This document shows positions 36,340 through 60,019 of a stretch of DNA of 64,000 nt, piece after piece. The translations under genes were made by a program, and so were the position numbers. Numbering within the stretch: the first letter of the stretch is position 1; the number at the start of each line of letters is the position of its first letter. The notes below the pieces were generated by a model. The model was not told the origin of the DNA and did no database searches. It saw only the letters and a program-made list of their open reading frames with translations. Origin of the DNA: Macrostomum lignano (lineage: Eukaryota); the NCBI GenBank assembly GCA_002269645.1, contig NIVC01002646.1:1-64000 (forward strand), read 5' to 3'.

Positions 36340-36725
36340 TATTCACAATTCGAATATTCACTATTTTCACAAACCCAGTATTCACATTTCAGATATTCCC
36401 TATTTTCACAAACCCAGTATTCACAATTCGAATATTCACTTTCACAATCCCAATATTCACACAGCCTTCAAAATTCCAATCGTCACAGTCTTTACAATCA
36501 CAATCTTAACATCATTCACAATCCCAATCTCCACAGTCTTCACAATCCCAATATTCACAGTCTTCACGATCACAATCTTCACAGTCTTCACAATCTCAAT
36601 CTTCACAATCTTCATATTCACAGTCTTCACAATCCCAATATTCACAGTCTTCACAATCCCAATATTCACAGTCTTCACAATCTCAATCTTCACAGCCTTC
36701 ACAATTCCAATATTCAATCTTCACA
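36340..36725. repeat. ~24-bp degenerate minisatellite, intergenic
   Basis: Unit approximately TTCACAATCCCAATATTCACAGTC. Confidence 0.85.
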
Positions 36726-36905
36726 AAACTAAAAATAGATATACGAAATAGCAATTAAGTGATTAACTCTGATTTATCACACCTGTTTCAGCTTCAACCG
36801 TCTTCTGCAGAACAAAAAATTGCTTTTAAAATTAAGAAATTAAACAAAACAGCCGGGCCTCTGGGGCGAACTGGTTGTTGACCCTGCGCTGGTCAGCCCT
36901 CGAGC

Positions 36906-39900
36906 ATGTCGATGCTTGCTTGGTTTCCAGTCTCCGGGCACCAGTTGACACCGCTGTTACTTCTGCTGGTGCCAATTGACCTGATTTTGTGTCAGGTAAA
37001 TGTTATTAACATTCTTAAATAATGTTATTCTTAATGTCAGATTCTCAACCTGAGATTCTCATCTCATTGTCAGATTCTTAACCTGAGATTCTCATCTCAG
37101 TATCAGGTTCTCAACCTGAGATTCTCATCTCAGTGTCAGATTCTAAACCTAAGAATTTCATCTCAGAGTCAGATTCTCAATCTGAGATTCTTAATGTCAG
37201 ATTCTCAACCTGATATTCTCATTGTCAGATTCTCAACCTAAGATTCTCAATGTAAAGATTCTCTACCTGAGATTCTCAATTTCAGATTCCGACTATGAGA
37301 TTATTATCAAGGCTAAAGAGTCTCACTATGAGATGCAATTTTCATCTCAATACTCACAGAAAAATCCAACATTAAGAGTATTCTCCTGTCTCAACACCTG
37401 CTCAGCAGAATCGGGACCCAGATTTCGGCAATTCCAATTCCCGACTCATCCAGCATGAGCCAGGCGCCATCCTCCACAAGGAAGTGCGTCAGAAGCTTGC
37501 AACTCCAGCTGTACCAACGCAACGTCCCATACCTGACGATGTTGGCCTAGCTGGGGAGAACAACTTTGCGCTGTTGGACCCGCCAGACACTGAGTTTCAC
37601 GTTTGGCGAGCGCCGTTCCCCAGCCTCGGTGAGGCCTGGCCCCGACCGACTCGTCAGTACACCAGTCGCAGTCGGGGTCGCATTACCGCGCCGGAGCAGC
37701 TCAGCTTAGCGGCTAAAGAATTTCAGTTTGTTTTAACTAGCCCAACAGAGTCTGATTGTCCGATAGCGGTTGTTGAGCTGCTCAAAATGGCTTTTCAACG
37801 GTATAGGCGGGTGATTGTTGATCAGAGAGCCGTTAGTGTGGCCGCTGGAGCTGCCGCTGATGCTGATGGACACATTTGGCAGCTCAGTGTGCGGCTGACT
37901 ATTCAGTCTTCTGATGAAAAGTGGCGAACGGCGCCTCTGATGCCCAGTCTGGACATGGATGAGAGCTGTGAGAGCTGACTGTTTTATGTGTAACTTTCTT
38001 GATTTTGGATTTTATGTTTCTTGTAAACTGCGTGTCTTCTATACATTGCTGCAGTCGTGTGTGCGGTCAGTTTCTTCTTTTCTCTAATATTCTCTCTCCT
38101 CTCCTCTAATCTCCTCTACTCTCTTCTCCTCTGTCTCCTCTCTTCTCCTCTCCTCACCTCTTTTCTCTTCTGTCTTCTCTCTTCTCCTCTACCCGCTTCT
38201 GTCTTTCCTCTACTCTCTTATCCCTCCTTCCCTCTCCTCTCCCTACATCTATTCTCTCTTCTCTCTCCTCTCCTCTCATATTCTCTCTTCTCCCCTCTCC
38301 TTTCTTCTCCTCAATCCTCTAGCCAACTCTGCTATTAACCGCCTTAAGGGTAAAACTAGCTATGCAAAAAAGATTTGCATATAATCTACGTTATATGCGC
38401 ACAATATAACATAATAATATTATTAATTTGCTTAGTCAAAAAGGTTTTTTCCTGTCAGTGTCGCGCTATCAGTGTGGCTCGATGCATTTCTGCTCGTAGT
38501 TAATTATCTATATTTCTTCTTTAATTAACCGCTCTTAGACACGCTAAAGATTAGCAAAACTGAAGCGGTGCTCAGTGCCCCAGAGCCGTGGGGTGTTCTG
38601 CGCGGCCTGCAAACTTTCAGCCAGCTGGTGTGGCAGACTCAAGATGCAGCTGTGAGTTCCGCTTATCATTCATTATTATTACATATTTTCACATGAAGTT
38701 AGCATTGCCCGTCTGTTGTTATTAATTTCAGCTGTACGTTAACAGTACAACAATATTTGATAAGCCAAGATTCAAGCACCGCGGCTTGCTGGTGGATACG
38801 TCCCGACATTACCTAAGTATGGAGACTCTAAAAACTAATCTAGTGAGTTTCTATTGTTGATTGCACTCAGTCTGTGTGTCTGCGTTGGTGTCTGTCTGTC
38901 TGTCTCTGTGTGTCTGTCTGTCTGTCTGCCTGTCTGCCTGTCTGCCTTGGTGCCTGTCTGTTTGTCCGTCTGTCTGTCGTCTGCCTTGGTGTAGGTCTGT
39001 CTGTGTCTGTCTGTCTGTCTCTGTGTGTCTGTCTGTCTGTCTGCCTTGGTGTAGGTCTGTCTGTGTCTGTCTGTCTGTCTCTGTGTGTCTGTCTGTCTGT
39101 CTGCCTGTCTGCCTTGGTGTCTGTCTGTCTGTCTGTTTGTCCGTCTGTCTGTCTGCCTTGGTGTAGGTCTGTCTGTGTCTGTCTGCCTGTCTGTTTGTCT
39201 GTCTGCCTGTCTGTTTGTCTGTCTGTCTGTCTGCCTGTCTGTTTGTCTGTCTGTCTGTCTGTATGTCTGCATATCAGTCTGTCTTTCTGTCTGTCAGTCT
39301 GCCTTAGTGCCTGTATGTCTATCTATCCATCTATTTTTTAAACCTACAGGACGCCATGGAGATGAACAAGTTAAATGTATTTCACTGGCACATTGTGGAC
39401 GATCAGTCGTTTCCCTATCAGAGTGTGGTATTTCCTAAGCTATCTGAGAAGGTAAAAAAACGTTTTAAAGTGTTTTTTACTATGCTTTAATTATTTGTTT
39501 ACTCTAAACAACATTTTTTAACACACAGGGCGCATATGATAGTAATAGCATTTACTCATTATCCAATATTCGAGAGATAATTGAGTACGCCAGAGTTCGG
39601 GGCATACGAGTTATACCCGAGTTTGACACGCCTGGTAAGTCATGCCGAACTTTGGTTTGATAAATGCTATGAAAATCCTTCCAGCTGAAGCAAATACCTT
39701 TACCCCAGATGTTCACACACTGGCCATAGAATACAACCCCCTCTACCCCAGATGTACACACTGGTCATAGAATACAACCCCCTCTACCCCAGATGTACAC
39801 ACTGGCCATAGAATAAAACCCCCTCTATCCCAGATGTACACACTGGTCATAGAATACAACCCCCTCTACCCCAGATGTACACACTGGCCATAGAATAAAC

Positions 39901-42900
39901 CCCTCTACCCCAGATGTACACACTGGCCATAGAATACAACCCCTCTACCCCAGATGTACACACTGGCCATAGAATAAAACCCCCTCTATCCCAGATGTAC
40001 ACACACTGGCCATAGAATGAACCCCTCTACCCCAGATGTACACACTGGCCATAGAATAAAACCCCCTCTACCCCAGATGTACACACTGGCCATAGAATAC
40101 AACCCCCTCTACCCCAGATGTACACACTGGCCATAGAATACAACCCCTCTACCCCAGATGTACACACTGGCCATAGAATAAAACCCCCTCTATCCCAGAT
40201 GTACACACACTGGCCATAGAATGAACCCCTCTACCCCAGATGTACACACACTGGCCATAGAATAAAACCCCCTCTACCCCAGATGTACACACTGGCCATA
40301 GAATAAACCCCTCTACCCCAGATGTACACACTGGCCATAGAATACAACCCCCTCTACCCCAGATGTACACACTGGCCATAGAATACAACCCCCTCTACCC
40401 CAGATGTACACACTGGCTATAGAATAAAAACCCCTCTATCCCAGATGTGTACACACTGGCCATAGAATATAACCCCCTCGGCCCAGATGTACACACACTG
40501 GCCATAGAATAAAACCCCCTCACCCCAGATGTACACACATTGGCCATAGAATAAAACCCCCTCACTCCAGATGTACACACTGGCAATAAAATAGAACCCT
40601 TCTACCCCAGATGCACACATACTAAGCCTTTACTCAAGACATACACATCCTCAAGTAACTCAAAACCTTTCCATTTAGCTTAAGTTTTCTATCTATATGC
40701 TACTAAAAGCAGAAATTAAGAAACGCCATGCCTGTAAAATTTTCAGCCCACACGCACAGCTGGTCTCTTGGCTATCCGGAAATTTTCACGCAATGCTTCA
40801 ACTATGCCAACCGCTGGACCGGTTTCTATGGTCCCATGAATCCGGCATTGAATGCTACCTTCGATTTCCTTAAAAAGCTGTACGCAGAAATTTCTAGCGT
40901 ATTCAAAGATAATTATATTCATCTTGGAGCTGACGAAGTTGGCACCTCTTGTTGGTAAGTGTTTAATGTTTATCTGTTGTACTCGTAGCTTATAACAAAC
41001 ATTAATGTCAAAGCTCTATTATCACCTTACAGGGATAATAATCCCATTGTGAATCGAATGCGAGCTGATTTTGGTTTCTCTAGGAGTGATCAGCTGATTG
41101 ATTATTATTTTCGACGGTAAAGTTACTTGCTGTGTGGATTTTAGTTAGTTTGCACTCCCACTCTTCTTTTATTGAATGTTGTTTACACCGTACCAATACC
41201 CACAGATTGCAAAATATCATAACATCTTTGAGTGCCGGCAAGTCAAATAGTAATAAACGCGGTTTTATTGTATGGCAAGAGGCTTACGATCACGGTGTTA
41301 TGGTGAGTTTTGGTGACAAATGGCTTCTGATTCGAGTAAATTCGATTCTTTAGTAAATGTTGTGTGTACATCTGGGGTTGCGAGGAGGTTTTATTTTATG
41401 GCCAGTATGTGCACATCTAGGGTAAAGGGGGGTTTATTCTATGGCCAGTGTGTGTACATCTGGGGTAGAGGGGGTTGTATTCTATGGCCAGTGTGTACAT
41501 CTGGGGTAGAGGGGTTTATTCTATGGCCAGTGTGTACATCTGGGGTAGAGGGGGTTTTATTCTATGGCCAGTGTGTACATCTGGGGTAGTGGGGTTTATT
41601 CTATGGCCAGTGTGTGTACATCTGGGGTAGAGGGGTTTTATTCTATGGCCAGTGTGTGTGCATCTGGGGTAGAGTGGGGTTTATTCTATGGCCAGTGTGT
41701 GTAAATCTATGGTAGAGGGGTTTTATTCTATGGTCTATGTACATCTGGGGTAAAGGGTTTTATTCTATGGCCAGTGTGTGTACATCTGGAGTAGAGGAGT
41801 TTTTATCAGAATGATAACTAATTACAATACATTGAAGTGTAGCCAGTTTTGCAGTAAACTACAGTAACGATCTTTCTGTTTTCTAAGTTTCGAAAACTTT
41901 ATGAAAATCTAACTTAAGTTCAATAATACGCTCGTACTATTAGTAGTAGTAATACAATATGTCTTACTCTATTTTTCTCATTTTAGCTAAAGAGAGGCAC
42001 CATAGTGCAGGTATGGAAAGGCGAAGCCTCCGATGTAGCCATGGTCGCCCAAGCTGGCTACCGAGTTCTCTACAGCACCTGCTGGTACCTGGACAGGCTA
42101 GAGTACGGTCCTCAGTGGACTAAAATGTACCTGTGCGATCCTATTGCTAATTATGCTGGCACTTATAATGGCGGACCGTTTCAACAGCAGATGCCGCAGC
42201 AGCAGCCGCCACCTCAGCAGCAACAGCAGCAGCAGCCACCGCCGCCTTCTTGGATGGCCAACGTTCTTGGCGGTGAAGCCTGCATGTGGAACGAATACCA
42301 AGACGATAATACTGTGCTGCAGAGGATTTGGTAAGGCCACTTGAGGATTGACGCTGCACTCCATCAGATTTTATCTCCTTGAATCCCACACCACATCCTA
42401 TTGAATCCCACACCACATCCTATTGAATCCCACACCCCATCCTATTGAATCCCACACCACATCCTATTGAATCCCACACCACATCCTGTTAAATCCACAC
42501 CACATCCTATTGAATCCCACACCACATCCTATTGAATCCCACACCCCGTCCTATTGAATCCCACACCCCGTCCTATTGAATCCCACACCCATTCTATTGA
42601 ATCCCACACCCATCCTATTGAATCCCACACCCCATCCTATTGAATCCCACACCCATTCTATTGAATCCCACACCCATTCTATTGAATCCCACACCCATTC
42701 TATTGAATCCCACACCCATCCTATTGAATCCCACACCCATCCTATTGAATCCCACACCCCATCCTATTGAATCCCACACCCATTCTATTGAATTCCACAC
42801 CCATTCTATTGAATCCCACACCCATCCTATTGAATCCCACACCCATCCTATTGAATCCCACACCCATCCTATTGAATCCCACACCCCGTCCTATTGAATC

Positions 42901-45900
42901 CCACACCACATCCTATTGAATCCCACACCCCATCCTATTGAATCCCACACCCATTCTATTGAATCCCACACCACATCCTATTGAATCCCACACCACATGC
43001 TATTGAATCCCACATCCATTCTATTGAATTCCACACCCCACCTTATTGAATCCCACACCCATCCTATTGAATCCCACACCACATCCTATTGAATCCCACA
43101 CCACATCCTATTGAATCCCACACTACATCCTATTGAATCCCACACTACATCCTATTGAATCCCACAATTTATCATATTGAATCCCACACGAATCCCATTG
43201 AATCCCACACCAATCCTGATGAAATACCACAACTAAAACCCATAGCTCGTAAATGCTACATCTTCAACCCCAGAAACTCCGCACCACATGATCATTTAGA
43301 ATCAGATTTCAGCCTAAAGTCCTCAACGGCTCCAATTACACTTACAAACCCTGTTCATAAAGCTGGGCTACAAGCTTCACACATTCACCCCCGTGTCCCA
43401 CCAATCCAACAGGCCTCTCGCTTCCGCAGTAGCTGAGCGTCTCTGGAGCTCACCGGAGGCCACTCGCGACCTGCTAGCCGCTGGGCGCCGTATCGAAGAG
43501 CAGCGCTGCAGGATGCGAGCTCGCGGCATCCCGGTCGGCGTAGCCAGCGGCCCCGGCTCTTGTCGGCCGCCGCCACCTGCCGGCAACAGATCAAGGAATA
43601 AGCTTCCAAAAAGGAATAGAAAAATTCCAAAACTAGAGAAACAGTCGCTAACAAATCGAATGGTTGGCGTTAAGCAAACGGCGGCTCCTTTGTCTGCTAC
43701 TGGGTCTGGCTCCTCGAAAAGTGACACCGATTATGCGGACTCCGATCACGACTTGTCGTTTCGTCGATCCCTTGTTAAACGTCGAGGGCCCCAGCAGCAG
43801 CATCAAGATAAGGTAAAATCTAAATCAGTAATGTCAAAATCAGTAATGTCAAAATCAAAATCAGTAATGTCAAAATCAAATTCATTCCTGTCAAAATCAA
43901 AATCAGTAATGTCAAAATCAAAATCAGTAATGTCAAAATCAAAATCAGTAATGTCAAAATCAAAATCAGTAATGTCAAAATCAAAATCAGTAATGTCAAA
44001 ATCAAAATCAGTAATGTCAAAATCAAAATCAGTAATGTCAAAATCAAAATCAGTATCGTTAAAATCTAAATCAGTAATGTCAAAATCTAAATCAGTAATG
44101 TCAAAATCTAAATCAGTAATGTCAAAATCTAAATCAGTAATGTCAAAATCTAAATCAGTAATGTCAAAATCTAAATCAGTAATGTCAAAATCTAAATCAG
44201 TAATGTCAAAATCTAAATCAGTAATGTCAAAATCTAAATCAGTAATGTCAAAATCTAAATCAGTAATGTCAAAATCAAAATCAGTAATGTCAAAATCAAA
44301 ATCAGTAGTGTCAAAATCAAAATCAGTATCGTTAAAATCTAAATCAGTAATGTCAAAATCTAAATCAGTAATGTCAAAATCTAAATCAGTAATGTCAAAA
44401 TCAAAATCAGTAATGTCAAAAATCAAAATCAGTAGTGTTAAAATCAAAATCGGTAGTTTCAAGATCAGTAATGTCAAAATCAAAATCAGTAATGTCAAAA
44501 ATCAAAATCAGTAATGTCAAAAATCAAAATCATTGATGTCAAAATCAAAATCAGTTGTCTTAAAATTAAAATCAGTAATGTCAAAATCAAATTCATTCCT
44601 GTCAAAATCAAAATCAGTAATGTCAAAATCAAAATCAGTAATGTCAAAATCAAAATCAGTAATGTCAAAATCAAAATCAGTAATGTCAAAATCAAAATCA
44701 GTCATGCCAAAATCAAAATCAGTAATCTCAATATTAAAATCAGTAATCTCAAAATTAAGATCAGTAATGTTAAAATTAAAATCAGTAATCTCAAAATTAA
44801 AATCAGTAATGTCTAAATTAAAATCAGTAATCTCAAAATTAAAATCAGTAGCGTCAAAATCAAATTCATTCATGTCAAAATCAAAATCAGTAATCTCAAA
44901 ATAAAAAACAGTAATGCCAAAATCAAATTCATTCATGTCAAAATCAAAATCAGTAATCTCAAAATTAAAATCAGTAATGTCAAAATCAAATTCATTCATG
45001 TCAAAATCAAAATCAGTCATGTCAAAATCAAAATCAGTAATCTCAAAATTAAAATAAGTAATGTCAAAATCAAATTCATTCATGTCAAAATCAAAATCAG
45101 CAATCTCAAAATTAAAATAAGTAATGTCAAAATCAAAATCAGTCATGTCAAAATCAAAATCAGTTATCTCAAAATTAAAATCAGTAATGTCAAAATCAGA
45201 TTCATTCATGTCAAAATCAAAATCAGTCATGTCAAAATCAAAATCAGTTATCTCAAAATTAAAATCAGTAATCTCAAAATCAAATTCATTCATGTCAAAA
45301 TCAAAATCAGTAATCTTAAAATTAAAATCAGTAATCTCAAAATCAAATTCATTCATGTCAAAATCAAAATCAGTCATCTTAAAATTAAAATCAGTAATGT
45401 CAAAATCAAATTCATTCCTGTCAAAATCAAAATCAGTAATGTCAAAATCAAAATCAGTAATGTCAAAATCAAAATCAGTAATGTCAAAATCAAAATCAGT
45501 AATGTCAAAATCAAAATCAGTAATGTCAAAATCAAAATCAGTCATGTCAAAATCAAAATCAGTAATCTCAATATTAAAATCAGTAATCTCAAAATTAAGA
45601 TCAGTAATGTTAAAATTAAAATCAGTAATCTCAAAATTAAAATCAGTAATCTCAAAATTAAAATCAGTAATGTCTAAATTAAAATCAGTAATCTCAAAAT
45701 TAAAATCAGTAGCGTCAAAATCAAATTCATTCATGTCAAAATCAAAATCAGTAATCTCAAAATAAAAAACAGTAATGCCAAAATCAAATTCATTCATGTC
45801 AAAATCAAAATCAGTAATCTCAAAATTAAAATCAGTAATGCCAAAATCAAATTCATTCATGTCAAAATCAAAATCAGTAATCTCAAAATTAAAATCAGTA

Positions 45901-46706
45901 ATGTCAAAATCAAATTCATTCATGTCAAAATCAAAATCAGTCATGTCAAAATCAAAATCAGTAATCTCAAAATTAAAATAAGTAATGTCAAAATCAAATT
46001 CATTCATGTCAAAATCAAAATCAGTAATCTCAAAATTAAAATAAGTAATGTCAAAATCAAAATCAGTCATGTCAAAATCAAAATCAGTTATCTCAAAATT
46101 AAAATCAGTAATGTCAAAATCAAATTCATTCATGTCAAAATCAAAATCAGTCATGTCAAAATCAAAATCAGTTATCTCAAAATTAAAATCAGTAATCTCA
46201 AAATCAAATTCATTCATGTCAAAATCAAAATCAGTAATCTTAAAATTAAAATCAGTAATCTCAAAATCAAATTCATTCATGTCAAAATCAAAATCAGTCA
46301 TCTTAAAATTAAAATCAGTAATGTCAAAATCAAAATCATTCATGTCAAAATCAAAATCAGTAATTTCAAAATAAAAAATCAAATGCAGGTTCCAATCGCA
46401 GAGTATCAACATCGAAATAGGATTTACGCGATTTCCAAGAGCCAGCATCATCAACACCCGGTGGCTCTGTTCCTAGCCCTGGTGCTGGCAGCTCTGGCTC
46501 TGTTCCTGGTGCTGTCCAGAGCGGTGTTCGTGCTGAGAATCACCCGCTACGGTGGCAGCACCGCAGGTTTGGAGTCGGCCGGCTCCACCGAGGGCAAGGC
46601 TGCATGGCTTCTGTGGCCCTGGCTGCGGCCCCGGCGACTCCTGCTGTGTCTGGCCATTGCCGCCGCTTGCAATGTGCTGGTCTGGCTCTGGACTTCTATG
46701 GTCTGA
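36906..46706 (+). CDS. GH20 beta-N-acetylhexosaminidase (HEXA/HEXB-like), 12 coding exons, with C-terminal hydrophobic extension
   Basis: Exons 36906-36995, 37406-37967, 38539-38651, 38732-38842, 39350-39451, 39529-39634, 40747-40954, 41033-41116, 41206-41302, 41987-42330, 43413-43812 and 46389-46706, all GT-AG and in frame. Motifs: [67 protein letters not shown] (catalytic DE), [22 protein letters not shown]. The first and last exons are less certain. HEXA versus HEXB orthology cannot be assigned. Confidence 0.92.
37033..37330. repeat. Degenerate minisatellite in hexosaminidase intron 1
   Basis: Recurring TCAGATTCTCAACCTGAGATTCTCA. Confidence 0.85.
38075..38310. repeat. CT-rich low-complexity tract in hexosaminidase intron 2
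   Basis: CTCTC/CTCCT runs. Confidence 0.9.
38868..39325. repeat. (TCTG)n compound satellite in hexosaminidase intron 4
   Basis: TCTG runs punctuated by GCCTTGGTG. Confidence 0.95.
39695..40620 (+). repeat. ~40-bp minisatellite in hexosaminidase intron 6
   Basis: Unit approximately CCCCCTCTACCCCAGATGTACACACTGGCCATAGAATAAAA. Confidence 0.95.
41362..41805 (-). repeat. Same ~40-bp minisatellite, inverted, in hexosaminidase intron 9
   Basis: Unit TTATTCTATGGCCAGTGTGTACATCTGGGGTAGAGGGG is the reverse complement of the intron 6 unit. Confidence 0.95.
42380..43212. repeat. 21-22-bp minisatellite in hexosaminidase intron 10
   Basis: Unit CCCATCCTATTGAATCCCACA. Confidence 0.95.
43815..46372. repeat. 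21-bp minisatellite filling hexosaminidase intron 11
   Basis: Unit TCAAAATCAAAATCAGTAATG, with a ~840-bp higher-order duplication. Confidence 0.95.
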
Positions 46707-46767
46707 TCTTGAGCTTATTTTCATCGGCTGTTTCACTTCTGTAAATGCTTTTGGCTCTTTCTGTATT

Positions 46768-47372
46768 GTCCACTCTACTCTATCTACTCCCTACTCTATC
46801 TACTCTACTCTATCTGCTCCCTACTCTATCTACTCTACTCTATCTGCTCCCTACTCTATCCACTCTACTCTATCTGCTCCCTACTCTATCCACTCTACTC
46901 TATCTACTCCCTACTCTATCTACTCTACTCTATCTGCTCCCTACTCTATCCACTCTACTCTATCTGCTCCCTACTCTATCCACTCTACTCTATCTACTCC
47001 CTACTCTGTCCACTCTACTCTATCTACTCCCTACTCTGTCCACTCTACTCTATCTACTCCCTACTCTATCCACTCTACTCTATCTACTCTCTACTCTGTC
47101 CACTCTACTCTATCTACTCCCTACTCTATCCACTCTACTCTATCTACTCCCTACTCTGTCCACTCTACTCTATCTACTCCCTACTCTGTCCACTCTACTC
47201 TATCTACTCCCTACTCTGTCCACTCTACTCTATCTACTCCCTACTCTATCCACTCTACTCTATCTACTCTCTACTCTGTCCACTCTACTCTATCTACTCC
47301 CTACTCTATCCACTCTACTCTATCTACTCCCTACTCTGTCCACTCTACTCTATCTACTCCCTACTCTGTCCA
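46768..47372. repeat. 30-bp minisatellite downstream of the hexosaminidase stop (probable 3' UTR intron)
   Basis: Unit CACTCTACTCTATCTACTCCCTACTCTATC, bracketed by GTAAAT (46741) and CTCTAG (47379). Confidence 0.9.
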
Positions 47373-48208
47373 CCTCTAGTTTTCTAGTTAACTCTGGTTG
47401 CATCCTCTGTGCAGCATAATTTCCATGTTGATCTCGCTGTGGCACACGCTTTTTTCTAGCAAGTATTTCTACCTGTCTTACCCTTTCACTTAGTCGATCT
47501 CATCTTCATCTAGTATGCTGCTGTTTTACGTTTCAATTTTGCTAATTTTACTATTCAAATTTTGCACCGTCAAAATAGTCAGGTTATGAATGTAACTTTA
47601 AACATAACAACTTGTGCCTAACACATTAACTCTGTAATACCAGCAGCTTCCTTATTTGATTTCTGTTTGCTTCTGTTTTCGAATAGTTAGATTCGTTTTA
47701 AGCTTTGCTGTACGAATAACTATAACTATACGATAACTGCAGTGTCAGTACATAGATAATCACTACATGTGTAACTGACATCGACTCCAATATACATGTA
47801 GAAGAGACAGTATTCTAATCATTGATTATCCAATCTTTTATAAACATTTCTGATAGCACACCCTGTACTTATCAACTTTGTGTCCGGCATTTTACCCTTT
47901 AAATGTCCTTAAATCAGACTTCCCTTTTCCTTTTTCTATCTAATGCAATCGCCGTTATAACAGTTTGTAGTCAGTGCAAGTTTTAGCGCTGGGGTTGTTT
48001 ATAACAAATATCTTGTAAGAGTATATTTAGTTACATTCTGAAAATTAATAAAAATAAATTAATATTGTCGTGCATGCTTTTATTACTGAAGATTTACATC
48101 AGTTTACAGTTGAGTGTATTTTTATTCTGGATTTATTATGAAGAAAACAATTGACAAATATAACGCATCTGAAGTGTAAATATAATGATTACATTCAGAC
48201 TGTGTCCG

Positions 48209-48257
48209 ATCGGGTCTCAACGAACTATAGAAAGTTTTTCCGTTACGAGACCGTCAT
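48209..48257 (-). promoter_or_regulatory. SECIS element (type II) of the selenoprotein L-like gene
   Basis: Minus strand ATGAC-GGTCTC-GT-AACGG-AAAA-ACT-TTCTAT-AGT-TCGTT-GAGACC-CGAT. It has the non-Watson-Crick core UGAC/CGAU, helix II GGTCTC:GAGACC and AACGG:TCGTT, unpaired apical As and an apical mini-helix. Helix I is weak by eye. AATAAA follows at 48126-48121. Confidence 0.85.
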
Positions 48258-48359
48258 TAATGCGCTATATATATGTCAACTGCGTGTAATGTAATACATG
48301 TAATAAGTCTACTATTTTGGAATGGCAGAATGGATATTGGTATTTGACTGCAACATCAA

Positions 48360-48897
48360 CATCTTGTACCGACAGCAGTCCTTTCAAAACATCCTGTACA
48401 GACAGCAGTCCTTACAAAAATCCTGTACAGACAGCAGTCCTTACAAACATTTTGTACAGACAGCAGTCCTTACAAACATTTTGTACAGACAGCAGTCCTT
48501 ACAAACATCTTGTACCGACAGCAGTCCTTGCAAACATCTTGTACAGACAGCAGTCTTTGCAAACATCTTGTACAGACAGCAGTCCTTACAAACATCTACA
48601 TGTACAGACAGCAGTCTTTGCAAACATCTTGTACAGACAGCAGTCCTTACAAACATCTACATGTACAGACAGCAGTCTTTGCAAACATCTTGTACAGACA
48701 GCAGTCCTTACAAACATCTACATGTACAGACAGCAGTCTTTGCAAACATCTTGTACAGACAGCAGTCCTTACAAACATCTACATGTACAGACAGCAGTCC
48801 TTGCAAACATCTTGTACAAACAGCAATCCTTGCAAACATCTTGTACAATCGGCAGTCTTTACAAACATCCTGTACAGACAGTAGTCCCTACAAACAT
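48360..48897. repeat. 29/35-bp minisatellite between the SelL stop and the SECIS
   Basis: Unit TGTACAGACAGCAGTCCTTACAAACATCT, with or without ACATGT. Confidence 0.95.
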
Positions 48898-49021
48898 ATT
48901 TATCCTAGGGCACGTGTTCTGTACGTCCGTAGTCAATTCTACTAAGTGTTCATATTTTCCGGTAAAATAGCACCAGCATAACATAAAGCGACAAGTTATT
49001 TAATAAGCTACGCTAGCTACA

Positions 49022-51324
49022 CTACATGTACTCGCGACACTTGGCTAGAATAGTATCAATACTCGGTCGGTCAGTAGACGATCCGCCTGCCTGACTAAAC
49101 ACAAGCCGACACTCTGCATCACTACCCGATCCGTTATATTCTACTTTCAGTAGAAAATCGCCACCCATCTGCAGCAGATCCTCTGTGTTCACATCGGCCG
49201 GTTTGTCCGTTTTAACACCACAAGCGGACAGTTGGGCGTAGTGATGGAGAGCCGCTACGCCCCAGCTGTTGACAGCGGAACGATTCAAACCAAAGCGTCG
49301 ATACAGGTCACGTTCCGGGTCGGCGAAGGCACCTACTGAAGGATCATCGGATGTCTCTGTGCATGTACTATTTGGAGTTTTGTCAACTAGGCAGACGCGA
49401 GTTAACCAGTTGCGGATGACGTCTGGATCGGAAGCGAAGCTGATGAGCAGCGGGCGGCAGTGCGCAGCTTGCAGGCTTGGCTGCGCGGGTGTGTAAGATT
49501 TGGGTTATTGTAAATAATATATTATCCATGACAGTTAGTCAGTCAACCTGTCACAATCGCAGAGTTAATACGGCATGCAGTGGCGTAACACGGAGGCGTG
49601 ATCGGAAAACGAAACTTAAAAAGGCCAACAAGCTAGATTTATGACAAGAAATTAACAAGCCCGGGATAGCGGTAGCCCACCAAGAGGCAGGGGCGGGGCC
49701 CACCAAAAGATGGAGGGCGCCCACCAAAAGACAGGGGCTCCCACTAAGAGACAAAGGGTGTCCGCTAAAAGACAAGGACGTCCACCAAGAGACAGGGGTG
49801 CCCGCTAAAGGACAGGTACTCTAACCAAGAGATAGGGGCACCCAGCAAGAGACAGGGGCGCCCACCAAGATCCTTGGGACCCTTAAGTTTGATTAACCTT
49901 TACCTTGATTACTGACTAATCTCTGGACTGTTTTTACAAAACGACACTTACTCTAAGTGGAGCAACCCCTCTCAAGACCCAATTGTCTGGCACAAGTATA
50001 TGCCCCTACCTAGGGCTTTGGGGACGCCTCAGACAAAAATTGAAATACTGTAAACTACTGTATGCATGTGTGGCACCATAGGGTAATAAGTGTGTTTGTT
50101 ATAAAGTCATTCAGAAGTAGGTCATTCAGATAACCCAACATCATGCATGAGTATACATTTATAGCAGGAGATATAGTATATGGATGAACCTAAAGAGGTG
50201 CATACATTTTAAAGTTTAGCTGCCAGAAAAATAAAATTGCCATTTTGGGGAACTATGAAAATGATTTGGTATGCAAACTTTCAAAACTAAAAGGCTCTTA
50301 ACAATCTCTTAATATAAAACTACTCACAAGCCGCAACTGCAACTCTACCGCATGCTGCTGTCATGGATGTCAGGCTAAATGGCGTAGGAAAACTAGCAGA
50401 AGAAATTTAGTTCCTTGGCCAATCAGATTGCTGAGTGGGAGCTGCTGCTTAGTCGTTGCACAGACCAGTTGCATTTGAAGGACATCAGTAGCATTGGATC
50501 CAGGACTTTGAGGTAGCCACTGCTGTAGATATTTTGAATCAAGCTTAGTGAGAAATTCATCCCATGATTCCTATAAAAAAGCAAGAAAAATAATCATATA
50601 AAAATTTTGTAAAATTAATTTTTTAGTACAATAAAAATTTGGTTACCTCAAATTGCAAAAGATTTTCATATACTTCCTGAACCTCATATTGTACAAAATT
50701 TGCTTTGAACAGGGAATCTAATTCCTTGAATGAGTTGACACTGCATCTAAAAATTATCATATATATAAAAAAGTTTTTTTTATTGATCATTAATATATAA
50801 TGCTATTAATTTTTCCTAAACTGCAAATATACTTACTGTTTAAGCATAGATGAATATAAGCCAATCAATCTTCCACAAGTCAGCAATCTTTTGTCAAAGT
50901 TCTCTATACTATCATCTGAAAGGTAAATTTAAAAGACAAAAAGTAGTACACTTAGAATGTTTGCAGGGTATCAATTTACCTGTGAATAGTTGAAATTTTC
51001 AGTTTTTAATTCTTAATTTCTTAATTTAAGATCAAATTTAAGATTTAAATTTTAATTTAAATTAAGATCAATTTAAGATCTTAATTTAAGATCAAATTAA
51101 GTTTTTAACTTAATTTGATCTTCAACTAACGATTTTTAATTATTGATTATCTTGGAAACTTATTTTGCACTTAAATAACCAATTGATAATGAAAAACAGA
51201 CTTTTTGAGAAAACAGCTAACGATTACAAAGAAAGGCTTACTCACCTGCAAAAGTGTCCTTCAATTCAAGCAATACTTTGTTGGCATTTTGAATAAAACT
51301 ACTGACTGCAGAGAGGAAGTCCAT
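49022..51324 (-). CDS. SELENOL: Selenoprotein L-like (thioredoxin / AhpC-TSA fold, UxxU motif, two Sec), 319 aa, 5 exons
   Basis: Exons 51324-51246, 50915-50837, 50746-50647, 50570-50328 and 49480-49022, all GT-AG, 960 nt total and in frame. Protein: MDFLSAVSSFIQNANKVLLELKDTFADDSIENFDKRLLTCGRLIGLYSSMLKQ..VYENLLQFEESWDEFL..KFLLLVFLRHLA-U-HP-U-QQHAVELQLRLPSLQAAHCRPLLISF..FADPERDLYRRFGL..DLLQMGGDFLL..DRPSIDTILAKCREYM*. TGA codons at 50372-50370 and 50363-50361. SECIS downstream. Confidence 0.92.
49675..49870. repeat. ~20-bp degenerate minisatellite in SelL intron 4
   Basis: Recurring CCCACCAAGAGACAGGGG. Confidence 0.8.
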
Positions 51325-51819
51325 TGTTCTGAAGATTAAAACTTATATATGGACTATTATGAACACAATAAACTGAATCTAGATTGTGCTAGCTACATGA
51401 TAAAATTGTATCTAAAAAAATGGAGGCAGAAAAAGCGGCAAAAAATATAATACTATTTCATTGAATCATTTTGAACGAAAATTGACATTAGTATTTATAA
51501 ATTTATGGATTTTAGACAGTTTAAAGAAAATTTAAATGACAAAAAAGTAAATATTATAATATTAATTGCTTCTTGAAACAGCTATGTAACCACCGAAACC
51601 TGAAAACCATAGACTCATTTGATTAAATCATTCTAAAAAGTGATATCTATAAAAATCGGAAAGAAGCCTAAACATCACGGCATCGCCCTGTGAACCACTT
51701 CACACGTTCAAGGAAGCAATGCCCCCATCAGCCAATGCCAAAATATTGGACCGTACTGTTTTGGCCTTTAACTAAATACAGAACACTAATTACAGAACAA
51801 CAGGATACGCGTTCAGCGT

Positions 51820-52320
51820 CGTCACACGGCGCGCCTCAGGGTCAGCAGGTCGCGAATGAACGCTACGTACGCCGCTGTCCAAATCCAGGGCGCTGGCGTT
51901 AGCCAGCAGACAGTCCACGAAACGCAAGTGCGTTTAACAAGGCCACATCGTCATTCGCGTTGAGTCGTACTGCCCACATCTGGTGCAGGAGGTGCTGCTT
52001 CTGCAGGCACAACAACAACAACAACAATTCAGAATACAATTGCGTCACAGGGCGCGCTTCAAGGCCAGGTCGCGAATGAACGCCACGCCGCCGGCCAAAT
52101 CCGAGACGCCGGTGTCAGTCAGCCAGTGCGCGCCTGCCCTCGCCGGTAGAGTGCTTGATGCAGCGTTAGCAATTAACAGCACCTCCTGCGCGCCTCTGGG
52201 CAGTACGATCCTGCATGCGCTGATGATGTGGCCTGCCAACTGGAGTCGCTGACGGCGCAACAGGTCGCTTGGACGGACCAGGCCGGCGCGATGATACAAA
52301 ACCGCGTTGGTCACTCACTC
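51820..52320 (-). mobile_element. Two tandem RTE 3' end remnants
   Basis: TNAVLYHRAGLVRPSDLLRRQRLQLAGHII..VAFIRDLALKRAL. The GGTCGCGAATGAACGC block is duplicated at about 51849 and 52067. Confidence 0.7.
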
Positions 52321-52734: not shown

Positions 52735-55700
52735 TCCCAGGCGATCTAGGACGGTGTCGATCGATCATTGCCTGGAACAACGCCGCCCTCTGGCGGCCAG
52801 TTAGGGCCTCGGACGGCAGGACTGCACTCTCAGAACGAAGGCAGCCCAGGCAGCCCGCGGCGATGTCATAAATCTTTGCGGACGCCGGAAACCAGACCGC
52901 CAAGGTAGGTGAACCGCTGACAACGCGGGGCTCCATCGCCTGTCCATCAACCCCCCAGCACAAAATCACAGCCCCGATGTCTTCCTGCACGTAAATCAAG
53001 CACGACAGTTTTCTGCGTGTTGACCACCAGGCGACACTCGCCGCATCATCAACTATAGATTGTACAGTTGTCTGGGCGCCCTCAAAAGTTTAGGTCAGCA
53101 GGGCAAAATCCTCGGCGCAGCCAAGCACGCTGAGCTGTCTCTCCGGTTGACGTCGATCCACGCGTCGCCGCATCAGAAAGCCGTCGTCGTTGTGTAGGAA
53201 GAGCGGTCCGCAGCACCCAGTCAAGCACCAGAACGAACAGGAACGGAGCAAGCGTATCTCCCTGAAGCACCCCGGTGGATGTCTCAAAAAAGTCCGATAG
53301 GCCGTCCGGTGTTGATACAGCAGCTTTCGTATCACGGTACATCGCCATGATAGCGGAAATCAGCTGCTCTGGCCCGTTGTACGCACGGAGCACCTTTGGG
53401 AGCACAAAACTGACGACCGAGTTGAATGCCTTCTTGAAATTTATAAAGATAACAATCAGGATCGGTGGCGCATCCGCGCCTCCTCGATGACTCGGCGAAG
53501 AGCTAGGATCTGCGTCACTGTGCCGCGATGGGGCCGGAAGCCGATCTGCTCAGGACGCAGATACGGATCCAGCACGGGCTGCGCCTGCGATAGCAACATC
53601 CGGTTTAACAGCCTCGCAGCGCAGGATTCTTAGAAATTGCGACAATGTGCGCCCTGGTTCACTCGTTGGGTGCCTCCTCACCGAAGAGCACTCTGCAGTT
53701 TATCACTCTGGCAACCTCGCTGGCTACACAGTAGATGCTAAGCGCATCGATGGGCACCCCATCGGGATCCAGCGCTTTCCCGCGTGGTGTCTGTTGCGCG
53801 AGCCTCACAATGTCGACTGTGCTGATGAAGAGTTGATTCGGGAGGTGATCAGTCTCCCGAAAACTCCCACTTCCAGACACTTAAGCCTGGGAACAAAATA
53901 AAGTGATCACTTACTGTTGCGGGCTCCTCTTCTGTGTAGTGCAGGTTCTCCGAGCTCGTTTCTTCAAATCTTCTTCTTCTCCGGAGGAATCTTCTTGAAG
54001 TCTCGAATCGGCCGAATGAGAGCGTGACGATCAAATCAGGCGACGTCGCAGTATTTCTCGAATGCAAATCAATATAGGCCTTAAGCTCAGTAATCAATAT
54101 CAACGATGCGCCCTTGTAATAAAATCAACTTTCTGTAATAATCACGAGGACCTCCAAGAGGGACGTCTTCTTCTAGATCTAACGGAATCGGAGTCGTGTG
54201 CTCCTATCGGTTAATCTAGGATAACCAAAATCAATCAATCGATAATCCTCTAAGGGTATCGGAATCGGTCCGCAGATCCAATCCAATCCCTTAGGAAAAT
54301 GGGAGGCCTCAAATTCAATGAACTCAGTCCAAACGACTGGACAGTAACGGCCGGCAATAAATCGCTCTCAAAATCAATAACAAAGGCTCGAGCAACGGCT
54401 CACCAATTGGTTTATCTCTCTCTCAGAGATGTAGCCTCGCTTAGCTGTTCCAGCAAGCTCCAAGATCTTTAGAGGCTGCTCCGAGTCCCAAGATCTTTTG
54501 AGGCTGCTCCGAGTCTGAGATATTTAGCTGAGGAAAAATTGTTGAGAAACAGCTTATTTTTAGTAGGTGACAGTTTCGCGCTTTGGAAATTTGACCCCTA
54601 TGGAATACAATAGCTTTGAGCGCCGATACCATATTCGGAGTTCTAAATTTAAATGTTGCAAAAGATGGTCACTTGTTGTTTTCGTGGTCTTTAAAAATAA
54701 AGTATGACAATTTGCAGTTTTTGTAACATTCGAGTTTTTCGCATCTTCATGTTGCTACTTATAGTAGTCTACTTTGTATCTTATTTGGAGATCTCTACAC
54801 TGACTCATGCTAGGCTGAAAATCTCCTCTTCCAGCAACATAATATCAGGGGGCAGGGTCAGACTGTCTGTGGCAGCGGGGGCGGCGGCGCATTGAAAATG
54901 GCGGCGAAGAACTCACGCAGCTCGTTCCTGCGCTCGTCGGCAGAGTCACCCGCCAGGTTTAGCGGAATGCGCCGCTTTCGCCCCATCAGAGAGTTGAAAG
55001 CCGACCAGGCCACGCGACTTCTCTGTCACAAGGACCACTGTATATAGCTATATACCGTGGTCCTTGGTCTGGCATCGGGCCCAGCGGCGGAGAGGGCCTG
55101 AATGGCGTCATCAACAGCAGCCTGCTGCAGATAGACTGCTGCAGATAGACTGCTGCAGATAGACTGCTGCAGATAGACTGCTGCAGATAGACTGCTGCAG
55201 ATAGGCTGCTGCAGATAGACTGCTGCAGATAGACTGCTGCAGATAGACTGCTGCAGATAGACTGCTGCAGATAGACTGCTGCAGATAGACTGCTGCAGAT
55301 AGACTGCTGCAGATAGACTGCTGCAGATAGACTGCTGCAGATAGACTGCTGCAGATAGACTGCTGCAGATAGACAGCCGCCAAGGCCTCCTCTGCCTCGC
55401 GGGTTGGCCGCCTGCTCAAAAGGAGTCTCTTCTTCAGCACTTCCCTCGCTTGCCCAATCGCGGGGTCGTCTTGCCATATCGGCTGCCCCCGCTGGGCCGG
55501 TCGCATCAGCGGGACTGCTTGTTCTGTGGCGGCCCGAACTGAAACACACACAACTCCGCGTACTCGGCACCTCCACAATTGCCACCGAGCGCAGTGATGA
55601 AAGCGCTATCAAAGCGACTGTGCGTGTCGGCGTTCCTGAGCACGCGGTCGTAGCCGCTGCAGCGAACGGTAGAGCGAATCGCGAAGACAAAGGTCGCAGA

Positions 55701-56130
55701 CGACGCGAGGAGTCCATGCTCAGACCGCATAGCCAGCGGCGTGATGGCGCGGCGGCGCTCGCGGAAGCGCACCAGCACATGATCGAGCTGTGCCTGCCTC
55801 CTTGTTGCGTTCCGGCCACGCACATTCTGATGCTTGCGCTTGCAGCCCACAAAAGTTGCGAGTCTGCCCGGTGGCTTGCGGAAGCGGGTGTTGGCCGACA
55901 CCATTTCCTGCCTCTCTAGAAAATCCTCCAGCGCTCTGTTGCTGCCGTTCTCACCTGGAGTGATGAACGGTGACCGCTAAGACCTCATTAGCAGTTAGCG
56001 TTAGCGGTTCGCGTTCAGTTCTCCGAGGATGATCACTGTGTCACGCTGCAACGTTTGCCTCCACCTGTACCGAAAGCTGCTCGAAGAAGTCCTTAGCCTC
56101 ATCAGGACAGGTGGCGGGGGGCGCATACTC
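52735..56130 (-). mobile_element. Fragmented RTE LINE (endonuclease + RT) with nested insertions
   Basis: Endonuclease fragments at about 56130-55600 (VIILGELNA-like, QLDHVLVR..RSEH). RT at 53830-53050 (INFKKAFNSV, GVLQGDTLAPFLFVLVLDWVLR, LGCAEDFALL). Unrelated sequence at 53830-54890. Confidence 0.8.
55128..55373. repeat. 14-bp minisatellite inside the RTE
   Basis: Unit GACTGCTGCAGATA, about 17 copies. Confidence 0.95.
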
Positions 56131-56879: not shown

Positions 56880-58565
56880 TTGATTTACTTTTCTTAGCTG
56901 CAGGGCGGTCCGAAGACGCAGCGGGGAGGCGAGCGTCGCCCATTCCGCTAATCCCTGAAAGACCCGCATAGGCTAGGGCGCGGGGCCGGTCAGGGAGGTC
57001 TGACGGTCCTGTCTGCAGCGTTGTCTTCGGTGGGGAAGACGGAGGCTCGCTCGGTGGCCCGGAAGAACCGGATGAGCCGTGGGATGTTCTCGGGCCGGCA
57101 AACGTCGTCCAGGGACGGGTTGGGCCCGAGGTGGTTGAGCCGGTCTCGGTTGAAGGCCGGGCAGTAGCAGACGAAGTGCTTGGCGTCTTCGTTCTCGAGG
57201 TTGCAGAAAGGGCAGAGTTCGCTCCGGCGGGCACTTCGGAGGAAACAATGCCTGGCAAAGCAACCGTGACGTGAAGGTCATAGTGAGAGCGCGGATATCT
57301 TTTTGATTTTGGTTCAAAAGGATTCTCCGCAGCTTGAGGGACGGATTGGGCACTGCCGCACGAGATTGGCGGCAGTTGGAGATACCATCCCATCTGCGCA
57401 AGTGCAGGATGTCCGCCCAGTCGTTAATCTGACGATTGATGACTGTGGCGGGGATGGGGGCCAGGGGCACGGGGCCAAGGGGCGAGCCGGAACAGCCTGC
57501 CTTAGCGAGGAAGTCGGCGAGCTCGTTACCTTTGAAGCCGGCGTGTCCTGGGATCCATGTAAGCCGGACGGTGTTCCTCCGAGCCAGCTTGTTGAGCTGC
57601 CCGATACAGTCGCGGACTGTTCGGGAGTTCGTAGTGGTGTGACACAGGGCCTGCAGGGCGGCCTGGCTGTCAGAGTGGAAGAAAATTCTTCTGTCCTTGA
57701 AATCCCTGCAGTGGAGCTCAGCTGCACAGGAGCTGATGACAAGGATTTCGTTCTGGAAGACGCTGGAGAGTCTGCTAGTGTGTTGGGCGTGAGTAGCAAT
57801 CACGCGGCCGTTGATAAGGATGCAGACTCCAAAGCCGGATAAACCGTCTTTGGAGGATCCGTCAGTAAAGCAGTGAACCTCCTGAGGAGCCCAGCTGTCG
57901 TTGGCGTTCTCCCTAGAGGGGATAGTGACCTTGAAGCGTTGGTAGAGATTGAGGGAGCGCGGCTCAGCGTCCGAAAGGACAGCCGCATTCCCACTCTCCT
58001 CCAGAACTTTAAGGCACAGGTCAGAGTGCGGCAGGAGCTTGCGCTTCGCCATCGCTCTTTGTGGCTTGAAGCTAACGCCAGCCTCGATGAGCCGGCGGGT
58101 GGTTTTAGCAGCCTCGCGACGGACAAAGATGTCCAGAGGCGCGAGGCAAAGAAAAGCGTTGAGGCCGTCAAAGGGAGCAGAGAGCGGGGCATTCAGGATC
58201 ATGCGGCACGCACGTCCCTGCACCTTTTTGAGGGCTTCGTGGCAGGTTTTAATCTGCAAGGCGCTGGTCCAGACCAGGCCGGCGTAAGTAACGGCCGGTC
58301 GGACCATTGCGGTATAGATCCACCAGAGCTGTTTCGGGGTGAGGCCCCAGGTGGTGCCGACGGCTCTGCGCAGCTGCGCAAGAATCGCGAGGGCTTTTTT
58401 GGTTTTGGCCTGGACGTGGGTGGACCAGCTCAGCCGATGGTCCAGCGTCACGCCGAGACACTTGGCTTGCTTGCAGGATGGAATTTCCACCCCGTAAAGC
58501 TTTAGTGGGCGAATACGCCAGTTAACCCTGCTGGTGAACATGATCGCGACAGTTTTGGTCTGTCC
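56880..58565 (-). mobile_element. 5'-truncated LINE with RT C-terminus and RNase H (R1/Loa-like)
   Basis: KTVAIMFT..AKCLGVTLDHRLSWSTHV..IYTAMVRPAVTYA..CFTDGS..FHSDSQAAL..WIPGHAGFKGNELADFLAK. The 5' end abuts the THAP transposase. Confidence 0.9.
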
Positions 58566-58569
58566 AAGA

Positions 58570-60019
58570 AGAGATCCAAGAAGGCTGAAACCTGAATGCC
58601 GGGATCGCAGGGGTGTAAGAAAGAGGCAACTATCTCATTGGGAGAGCTTATTCTGGCACCAAGAAGCTCGATCGCTCGAATATTGTGCTGAGTCCCATCG
58701 CATGTAAATGATGAGGCAATAACGCCAACCTGGTAGAGCCGCTGGATTGATTCCTCTACGACACTTGAAAGAAATTCGCCATCAACTCCGCTCACTAGAA
58801 AATATCCTAAAGGTAGCTTCCAATAGCTCTTGAGACCCACTGCCATCACTACCAATGCTGAAGTTGCCTCCTGATCAGTTGACTTGCCATCGCCTTTGTC
58901 AACATAGCCAAAGAAACTGCCTTCATTTGAATTCCACTGAACCATCGCTTCCAGTGACATTTCATCAGCTACAACGTTGCAGTAGTCGAAGGATCGGTCA
59001 TCATTGGAGCTGCGTCGCCGAGAAAGTTCCTGAAAGGCTTGTTCACAAAATCCTGGAAGGCATTTCGCATTCGAGAGCCATCTTCTAAGCGAACCTGGAT
59101 GCGGAAGCTGAAAGTACTGTCTCACATACGCATAGGCCTTCGGGCTGTAAAAGTGCAATGTGGAGGCGAATTTCCGCACTTCGTGGGAGAATATTCTTGT
59201 CCTCTTGGTAATCTTGCTTGGCAAAATGCTGCTAAGCAGTGAATCGGAGGTCAAGAAATTCAGCCGAGATGCAGCAGCTTCATTCAAAATACATTTGGCT
59301 CTTAACTCTCGAATCACATCTTTCAGGGTCTTGGCTCTTTGTTTAATTTGCCTATGCTTTGAGCGCAGTGATCGAATTTTGCGGTACTTGCTCTGGAGCG
59401 ACCGCCTTAAGATTTCAACAGCCTTTGCACTTTTCTTGAACCGGCTATGAGTAGATAGAAGCCTTCTGTATCTGCGCCGAAGATTTTTAAGTGCTCTCAC
59501 CTTCTTGTCGAATTCTTCTCTGGGCACGCAGTTAACATGGATGTCCGGTCCAGGATCTTCATCTTCCTTGGCAGCCACTGGAGCTTCCGGCTCGCTGCTC
59601 TCTATTGATTTACAAAATGCAGCGAAATCAACTTCGCGAGCTGCGGCCGCGGTGGCAGTCTTCCGTTTCTTCTCAGCTTTCGGCTGCAGATGGTCAGGGA
59701 ACGCCGGGAAGATGGAAGGAACGGCATTTGGATATAGCCGTCTTTTGACGCTAGGCAGAAAGCCTGCAAATTGCTCTTTGAAGCAAGATTCCTCAAAATG
59801 CATTGAGCAGACTTGCGTGGATGGCGATGGCTCAAAATCTTTTCTTCTCAGCGCTATCAGCCACTTTTTCCTTATTTCCTTGTCCTTTGGAAAAGTATGA
59901 AAGGACACTCTCGCCAAAGACATTGCTGAGTTGTTCGAGCAGCCAGCAGCGCAGCAAAAGCTGCCGTAATTTCCTTTTCTTTTCCTCGGCAATTTAGAAG
60001 ATTCAGGTTGTTCTTTCAT
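58570..60019 (-). mobile_element. THAP-domain P-element-like (THAP9-type) transposase, truncated at its 3' end by the LINE
   Basis: C2CH THAP domain (CCAAGC..SFHTFP..W..VCSMHF..AVPSIF), a coiled coil, then FASTLHFYSPKAYAYVR..LPHPGSLRRW..VADEMSL..LPLGYFLV..TCDGTQHN..SAFLD, where homology stops. Confidence 0.9.

Follow-up and report, generated by a model that had tools for sequence, protein, structure and literature searches.

On the minus strand of a 64-kb window of DNA from Macrostomum lignano (contig NIVC01002646.1; the window is this whole stretch, positions 1 to 64,000, and all positions below are in its coordinates) lies a five-exon gene interrupted by two closely spaced in-frame TGA codons. 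We argue here that it is probably a functional selenoprotein L (SelL) gene, SELENOL, in which both UGAs would be read as selenocysteine (Sec, U) to give a protein with a UxxU redox motif. An earlier reading of this DNA, made from the letters alone, had proposed such a gene in what appeared to be a flatworm, and the host is one (Platyhelminthes, Macrostomorpha).

Gene structure

The three frames of 51700-48900 were read on the minus strand and the exons were then joined by script. The result reproduced exactly the five GT-AG exons and 319 codons of the sequence-only reading. The gene runs from 51324 to 49022, and its coding sequence, 960 nt in all, ends in a TAG stop (49024-49022) after the 319 codons. 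The parts of the gene are:

51246..51324, minus strand: exon 1 (79 nt), with the ATG at 51324-51322; codons 1-26 plus 1 nt
50837..50915, minus strand: exon 2 (79 nt), in which the N-terminal helical domain begins (..LLTCGRLIGLYSSMLKQ); matches the homolog P0005 from residue 48 on
50647..50746, minus strand: exon 3 (100 nt), a further part of the N-terminal helical domain (CSVNSFKELDSLFKANFVQYEVQEVYENLLQFE); homologous to P0005 and included in our alignment A1
50328..50570, minus strand: exon 4 (243 nt), which completes the N-terminal domain and carries the opening beta strands of the peroxiredoxin (Prx)-like domain as well as the redox motif LLLVFLRHLA-U-HP-U-QQHAVELQLRL, placed by profile and alignment
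50370..50372, minus strand: TGA codon 153, first predicted selenocysteine, from the spliced frame and the alignment
50361..50363, minus strand: TGA codon 156, second predicted selenocysteine (U-H-P-U), from the spliced frame and the alignment
49022..49480, minus strand: coding part of exon 5 (459 nt including the TAG), remainder of the Prx-like thioredoxin-fold domain

The TGAs at codons 153 and 156 are the only internal stops in the 319-codon frame, spaced as U-H-P-U just as had been reported, and the motifs said to continue beyond them, LISF (within LLISF), DPERDLYRRFGL, QMGGDFLL and DRPS, are all found in frame in exon 5. The introns, of 330, 90, 76 and 847 nt, all follow the GT...AG pattern with pyrimidine-rich tracts ahead of the acceptors, and their donor sites are, in order, GTGAGT, GTAAGT, GTAACC and GTGAGT. 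At the 5´ end, a TAA lies in frame six codons upstream of the ATG, and a CAG acceptor at 51331-51329, 4 nt 5´ of the ATG, could serve either cis-splicing or the addition of a spliced leader. The open frame, together with the homology on either side of the TGAs described below, lies far beyond what chance would produce. The base composition of the gene is uneven, with a GC content of 32-38% in exons 1-3, 14-23% in introns 1-3, 44% in intron 4 and 53% in exon 5; across the window it ranges from 23% to 58%.

Homology and predicted fold

An exhaustive HMMER search of a library of 1.8 billion proteins, with exon 5 as the query, matched 46 proteins. Two of these are M. lignano models from UniProt and the other 44 are distant homologs (31-44% identical, with E values of about 1e-9 to 1e-7 against the 1.8 billion proteins), among them a cluster that carries the NCBI name 'selenoprotein L [Biomphalaria glabrata]' as well as amphioxus, coral and acorn-worm proteins. 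For the part encoded ahead of the TGAs (exons 2-4), residues 38-152 matched residues 48-160 of P0005 (E=6e-15). The NCBIfam model NF040769, 'SelL-related redox protein', matched residues 138-313 (E=8e-26), a stretch that includes both the Sec site and the junction of exons 4 and 5, with a score of 90.7 bits that is below the model cut-off of 120; the Pfam families AhpC-TSA and AhpC-TSA_2 gave sub-threshold matches (about 5e-5). Since both flanks of the TGA pair are coding and show homology to a single family, with the order preserved, the locus has the classical genomic signature of a selenoprotein gene.

In the protein collection, full-length homologs read 'LLRHFA-W-xP-W-RDH' at the redox site, and both W residues correspond to TGA codons in the contigs L001, L002/L003, L004, L006, L007 and L008. 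Tryptophan stands at the Sec positions of these proteins (P0005, P0015, P0035, P0047 and P0056; loci L001-L004) because the gene caller evidently used a genetic code in which TGA is Trp; a 'W-x-x-W' that replaces a redox CxxC is a useful flag for selenoproteins in that collection. The TGAs in the window share alignment columns with the TGA-x-x-TGA of these six homologous transcripts, and in alignment A1 they also fall on both Cys residues of a bacterial CxxC relative (P0038). The same alignment indicates that conserved catalytic and structural residues are retained in the window protein, and the N-terminal helical domain of about 120 residues is common to other metazoan SelL proteins and to the UxxU homologs. 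Collectively, the Biomphalaria-named cluster, the other homologs and the NF040769 profile support the assignment of the predicted protein as selenoprotein L-like, the identity put forward in the sequence-only reading. The family also has a prokaryotic selenoprotein form: a homolog on a high-GC bacterial contig (L005, from SRR29636883) contains a single in-frame TGA in 'HRHLG-U-LPC' (UxxC).

TGA is one base away from TGC and TGT, which raises the question of whether the two stops are assembly or sequencing errors in the Cys codons of what is really a CxxC homolog. We found no evidence that supports this explanation, and we give it next to no weight. Two independent errors would be needed exactly at the two Sec positions of the family, every eukaryotic homolog examined has TGA at both sites, and the protein models derived from another assembly also avoid the exon with the TGAs, as would be expected if stops were present there.

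A structure model was made for P0005, which is 30% identical to the window protein, using an input alignment that included exon 5. In the model (predicted local distance difference test, pLDDT, 84.5; predicted template modeling score, pTM, 0.80), helices over residues 5-109 are followed by a thioredoxin-type domain, and the Sec positions, 161 and 164, lie at the turn between strand 151-157 and helix 162-172, which is the CxxC position. The best Foldseek match to this model in the PDB was the human prostamide/prostaglandin F synthase PRXL2B (the entry for a C44S/C47S mutant), followed by PrxQ/BCP peroxiredoxins, while a sequence search of the PDB matched nothing relevant. By way of this homolog, the model provides indirect evidence that the window protein would adopt a Prx-like thioredoxin fold with UxxU at the CxxC position, in agreement with the earlier proposal that the TGAs occupy the CxxC site of such a fold.

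SelU proteins carry a CxxU or CxxC motif. The predicted protein might instead be a different member of the peroxiredoxin-like group, either SelU/PRXL2 or a bacterial-type AhpC/TSA protein, that acquired its two TGAs independently. The structure nearest to the family model, human PRXL2B (SELENOU3), is consistent with this, as are the generic nature of the AhpC-TSA families matched in Pfam and the name 'peroxiredoxin-like 2C' that NCBI gives to one Biomphalaria model in the homolog cluster. However, SelU has been described as having one site that holds Sec or Cys (PMC13134290), whereas the UxxU in the window is located exactly at the TGA-x-x-TGA positions of six other species. In addition, the sole specific family model that was matched is 'SelL-related redox protein', and the N-terminal helical domain is one that the UxxU homologs share. 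The window gene thus has neither the single Sec/Cys site of SelU/PRXL2 nor the lack of a SelL-type N-terminal domain seen in that subfamily, and we consider it very improbable that it belongs there.

Together, these comparisons show an intact gene, whose predicted product combines an N-terminal domain of the SelL type with a Prx-like domain in which UxxU occupies the redox site.

A hairpin at the exon 4/exon 5 junction

When the spliced mRNA was folded over 87 nt from the first UGA, it formed a hairpin of 30 bp that starts with the second UGA and has arms contributed by two exons:

50328..50363, minus strand: 5´ arm, the last 36 nt of exon 4, from the second UGA
49440..49480, minus strand: 3´ arm, the first ~40 nt of exon 5

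The hairpin has a folding energy of -40.8 kcal/mol (z -3.7, matched by 0 of 200 shuffles), and the exon 4/exon 5 junction sits inside its 4-nt apical loop. With one arm in each exon, the structure can form only after splicing; the unspliced sequence at this position gave a z of -1.0. When the exon 4 tail was slid along 4.3 kb of the downstream minus strand, its best partner was 49481-49440, within 1 nt of the predicted acceptor (-42.8 kcal/mol compared to a mean of -15.4, sd 6.6, over the 4.3 kb). The joining of exon 4 to exon 5 thus has support that does not depend on protein homology.

The window that contains the hairpin has the lowest z of 29 windows tiled over the coding sequence, and in four of five full-length homologous mRNAs (L008, with a z of -5.6, L001, L006 and L002) the position after the UGAs ranks first or close to first in structure. 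The exception among the five is L007, and the partial L004 transcript showed no hairpin there. A Sec redefinition element (SRE) is a stable stem-loop within about 6 nt 3´ of the UGA that is more stable than the rest of the coding sequence, and the junction hairpin has both of these properties. By analogy, it may be an SRE-like aid to the decoding of two adjacent UGAs.

A candidate SECIS element in the 3´ flank

Both strands of the whole window were scanned for a Sec insertion sequence (SECIS) element with a pattern that requires an AUGA quartet, a helix II that closes next to the 3´ GA, and an unpaired AA 9-14 nt from the quartet. As a control, the scanner recovered convincing SECIS elements in L001, L002 and L004. 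The features of the flank are:

48209..48257, minus strand: core hairpin of the SECIS candidate (scanner hit 48257-48210), from the AUGA..AA..GA scan
48147..48283, minus strand: whole structured element, about 137-146 nt
48137-48132 and 48126-48121, minus strand: two AAUAAA poly(A) signals, read directly
48358..48897, no strand assigned: tandem repeat array of 29/61 nt (about 18 and 9 copies), between the stop and the SECIS candidate

The core hairpin reads AUGA-C-GGUCUCG(UA)ACGG-AAAA-ACU/UUCUAU/AGU-UCGU-UGAGACC-C-GA-U, that is, the AUGA quartet, the 5´ strand of helix II, an AAAA bulge, a mini-stem with its loop, the 3´ strand of helix II and the GA. The layout is type II-like, with an 11-bp helix II and a 3-bp mini-stem, and the hairpin is located 765 nt 3´ of the stop and about 70-85 nt 5´ of the two AAUAAA signals. 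It is the top AUGA..AA..GA hairpin on both strands of the window (128 kb), with a helix II of -11.3 kcal/mol; when the 1 kb of 3´ flank was dinucleotide-shuffled 400 times, this value was never reached.

The core is part of a larger element, whose folding energy is -45.3 kcal/mol (z -5.5, 0 of 200 shuffles). Here, a ~20-bp outer helix (UUGACAUAUAUAUAGCGCA / UGCGUUAUAUUUGUCAA) closes a multi-branch junction from which the SECIS-like hairpin and two small hairpins emerge; on the 5´ side the outer helix ends 3 nt before the AUGA, and it resumes about 50 nt past the GA. The plus strand of the same element folds to -33.7 kcal/mol, 11.6 kcal/mol worse than the minus strand, and the element is single-copy in the window. 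We regard the 48257-48209 hairpin as a good candidate for the SECIS of the gene, not as a demonstrated one. Should 48147-48283 be the SECIS, it would be unusual in having a branched lower half.

Other attempts to place a SECIS were set aside. A first, ungapped pattern scan gave no match. A covariance model derived from the consensus of Rfam SECIS_1 as a single sequence ranked 48257 first in 40000-52000 (12.5 bits, E about 0.2), a result to which we attach no weight; this model was discarded because it did not find the control SECIS elements and scored a spurious site equally. Further scanner candidates at 46543, 47509, 43358 and elsewhere have a weak helix II and lie inside repeats, and a more proximal AUGA at about 48953, picked out by eye, does not form helix II. 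We also dropped the idea that a 32-nt intron inside the element, once removed, would restore a canonical lower helix, because such an intron would be too short and its donor site is poor.

Gene models and surroundings of the locus

The two M. lignano models from UniProt, A0A1I8IZH1 (P0001) and A0A1I8FVG9 (P0002), map in order to the minus strand of the window. In exon 5, which is intact in both, they are 99% and 94-97% identical to it, respectively, and in the flanking segments 72-85%; they therefore derive from allelic or homeologous copies of the locus. Both skip the exon with the TGAs, bearing out the expectation that predictors would miss the gene: P0001 joins 'MDFLSA' of exon 1 straight to 'PSLQAAH' of exon 5, P0002 enters exon 5 out of frame, and both splice on beyond the real stop. 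The models are chimeras that extend over >15 kb and combine SelL exon 5 with fragments of reverse transcriptase and RNase H and with translations of low-complexity repeats (36300-63400, minus strand); neither of their names, 'Protein kinase domain-containing' and 'RNase H domain-containing', fits the SelL gene. The public protein models of the locus are thus wrong, and the real 319-residue protein is missing from them.

The density of tandem arrays in the window is exceptional (among them a 21-nt unit in 121 copies, a 30-nt unit in 20 and a 29/61-nt unit in 18/9), and the arrays give rise to long spurious open reading frames (ORFs) on both strands. One array is within intron 4 of the SelL gene and one within its presumed 3´ untranslated region (UTR). 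No tRNA gene was found within the window. The other features are:

43000-43217, 43834-46377, 46769-47378, 48358-48897, 49675-49870 and 51023-51113: tandem arrays
31187-31694, 36208-36732, 38874-39341 and 55111-55852: repeat-derived ORFs
58502-60019, minus strand: P-element-type transposase ORF of 505 residues with THAP, P-element transposase helix-turn-helix and TNP-like RNase H domains
56973-58541, minus strand: retroelement pol fragment ORF of 522 residues that contains an RNase H domain and matches part of P0002 at 91% identity

A functional gene or a silent duplicate

The main rival to a functional SELENOL gene is a silent or decaying duplicate. In such a copy, the frame would be intact but unexpressed, or Sec insertion would have been lost through the repeat in the 3´ UTR and through insertions in the SECIS, with translation stopping at codon 153.

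A number of observations weigh against a functional gene. Repeats and transposon debris surround the locus. M. lignano, whose genome is repeat-rich, is also a hidden polyploid (PMC10468722, PMC5730564), and with several copies of the locus present, the one in this window could be a silent duplicate. The presumed 3´ UTR contains the 540-nt tandem repeat. The SECIS candidate lacks a normal helix I, with about 50 nt and two small hairpins intervening where the helix would be expected beside the 3´ GA, and a two-base bulge sets its AA motif 14 nt away from the quartet, compared to 10-12 nt in the controls. Rfam SECIS_1 was unmatched in 46000-52000, 47900-49100 and 48140-48300, a negative that carries little weight because the SECIS elements of genuine SelL transcripts were likewise missed in kb-scale scans, with L001 reaching only 14.7 bits when 111 nt were supplied. 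An exact look-up of the 88-residue exon 5 ORF matched no contig, and two homology searches, one with the full protein and one with exon 5, came back empty despite the presence of close relatives in the collection, which we judge to be a limitation of the tool. As for the junction hairpin, its counterparts in the different species are out of register and without column-wise covariation. Given these differences in register and the failure of RNAalifold to find a common structure for the region in seven species, the conserved feature is a local tendency to fold rather than a homologous helix.

Several features of the locus are not those of a decaying copy. The 960 nt of coding sequence have accumulated no frameshift, extra stop or broken splice site, and the conserved catalytic and structural residues have been kept. 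The 30-bp junction hairpin is intact, as is the SECIS-like core, which is statistically unusual, and exon 5 is more conserved between copies of the locus than its flanks are. We consider a silent or damaged duplicate unlikely, and regard a functional SELENOL gene as the probable reading.

Proposed mechanism and distribution of SelL

If the gene is functional, both UGAs would be read as selenocysteine by means of one SECIS in the 3´ UTR together with SBP2, eEFSec and tRNA-Sec, as expected from the SelL family. By the same expectation, the protein would act as a thiol/selenol oxidoreductase, its two selenols alternating between the reduced state and an intramolecular diselenide. From the window, the SECIS would be the AUGA/AAAA/GA hairpin at 48257-48209, held within the larger branched structure just 5´ of the poly(A) signals, and the 30-bp hairpin across the exon 4-exon 5 junction could act like a Sec redefinition element, slowing the ribosome or otherwise favoring recoding at two close UGAs. 

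SelL is known from fish and many marine invertebrates (PMC3316567), among them Ciona (PMC2874816) and a sponge, Trichoplax, Nematostella, Capitella and amphioxus (PMC3473315), and it has bacterial relatives (PMC2398784). A 2013 survey of Schmidtea, Schistosoma japonicum and Taenia solium reported SPS2, TR and GPx selenoproteins in all three flatworms and no SelL, and placed the loss of SelL before the diversification of the flatworms (PMC3828610). Macrostomorpha have been described as a basal flatworm group (PMC5730564), and a SelL gene among them would move the loss to a later branch, after the Macrostomorpha split. As judged from its sequence, the M. lignano locus adds a new gene to a known family, in a phylum believed to lack that family, and it argues against a loss that preceded flatworm diversification. 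A literature search returned no paper that links Macrostomum to SelL, though newer transcriptome-based annotations or selenoprotein databases may already list the gene.

The gene fits the pattern of SelL persisting in aquatic animals and leaves the understanding of what SelL is unchanged. A broader scenario, which we offer tentatively and think rather doubtful as a whole, is that Macrostomum keeps a working Sec form of SelL that was lost later, toward planarians and parasites, and that its mRNA uses two unusual recoding aids. One would be a SECIS with its 3´ internal loop enlarged to a branched junction, and the other a two-exon hairpin directly after the UGAs; the hairpin would be general to SelL mRNAs, would have gone unremarked before, and would help to decode two UGAs that are only six nucleotides apart. 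M. lignano is a transgenic model (PMC5730564), and the junction hairpin and odd SECIS candidate would make a compact test case for the decoding of two UGAs.

Comparison with known systems

Within the Prx-like fold, SelU/PRXL2A-C resembles the predicted protein in having a CxxC-type motif at the same turn, with a template modeling (TM) score of 0.78 on the target for human PRXL2B. It belongs to another subfamily, described with a single Sec/Cys site and without the N-terminal helical domain, and the sequence identity to PRXL2B is only about 20%. The bacterial CxxC and UxxC relatives captured by NF040769 (P0038 and L005) are homologous over the whole length of the catalytic domain and have the redox motif at the same position, but they lack the N-terminal helical domain and carry CxxC or UxxC at that site. 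Bacterial selenoproteins would also use an in-frame bacterial SECIS (PMC4989117).

The SRE of SEPN1, as represented in papers that cite the original work (Howard et al. 2005, 2007, cited in PMC3541580, PMC4989117), is likewise a stem-loop in coding sequence a few nt 3´ of a UGA. The hairpin in the window differs from it, as described there, in that it follows a pair of UGAs, has its arms in separate exons and is not conserved in register between species.

SelL of fish and marine invertebrates remains the closest counterpart, going by later accounts of its description (Shchedrina et al. 2007, cited in PMC3316567, PMC4989117, PMC13134290). The M. lignano gene differs from it in the phylum of its host, since Platyhelminthes were reported to have lost SelL (PMC3828610). 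Other differences are the residues between the two Secs (H-P here, L-P or D-P in the homologs examined), two insertions of about 16 and about 7 residues in exon 5 that are specific to the lineage, and a SECIS candidate whose lower part is branched rather than a simple helix I. SelL relies on a single SECIS for both of its UGAs (PMC3316567, PMC4989117), and a diselenide can form between the two selenocysteines of its redox motif (PMC13134290). The predicted M. lignano protein shares with SelL the Prx-like thioredoxin fold with UxxU, the flanking motif LRH[FL]A-U-xP-U, the N-terminal helical extension of the other metazoan members and a marine or aquatic host.

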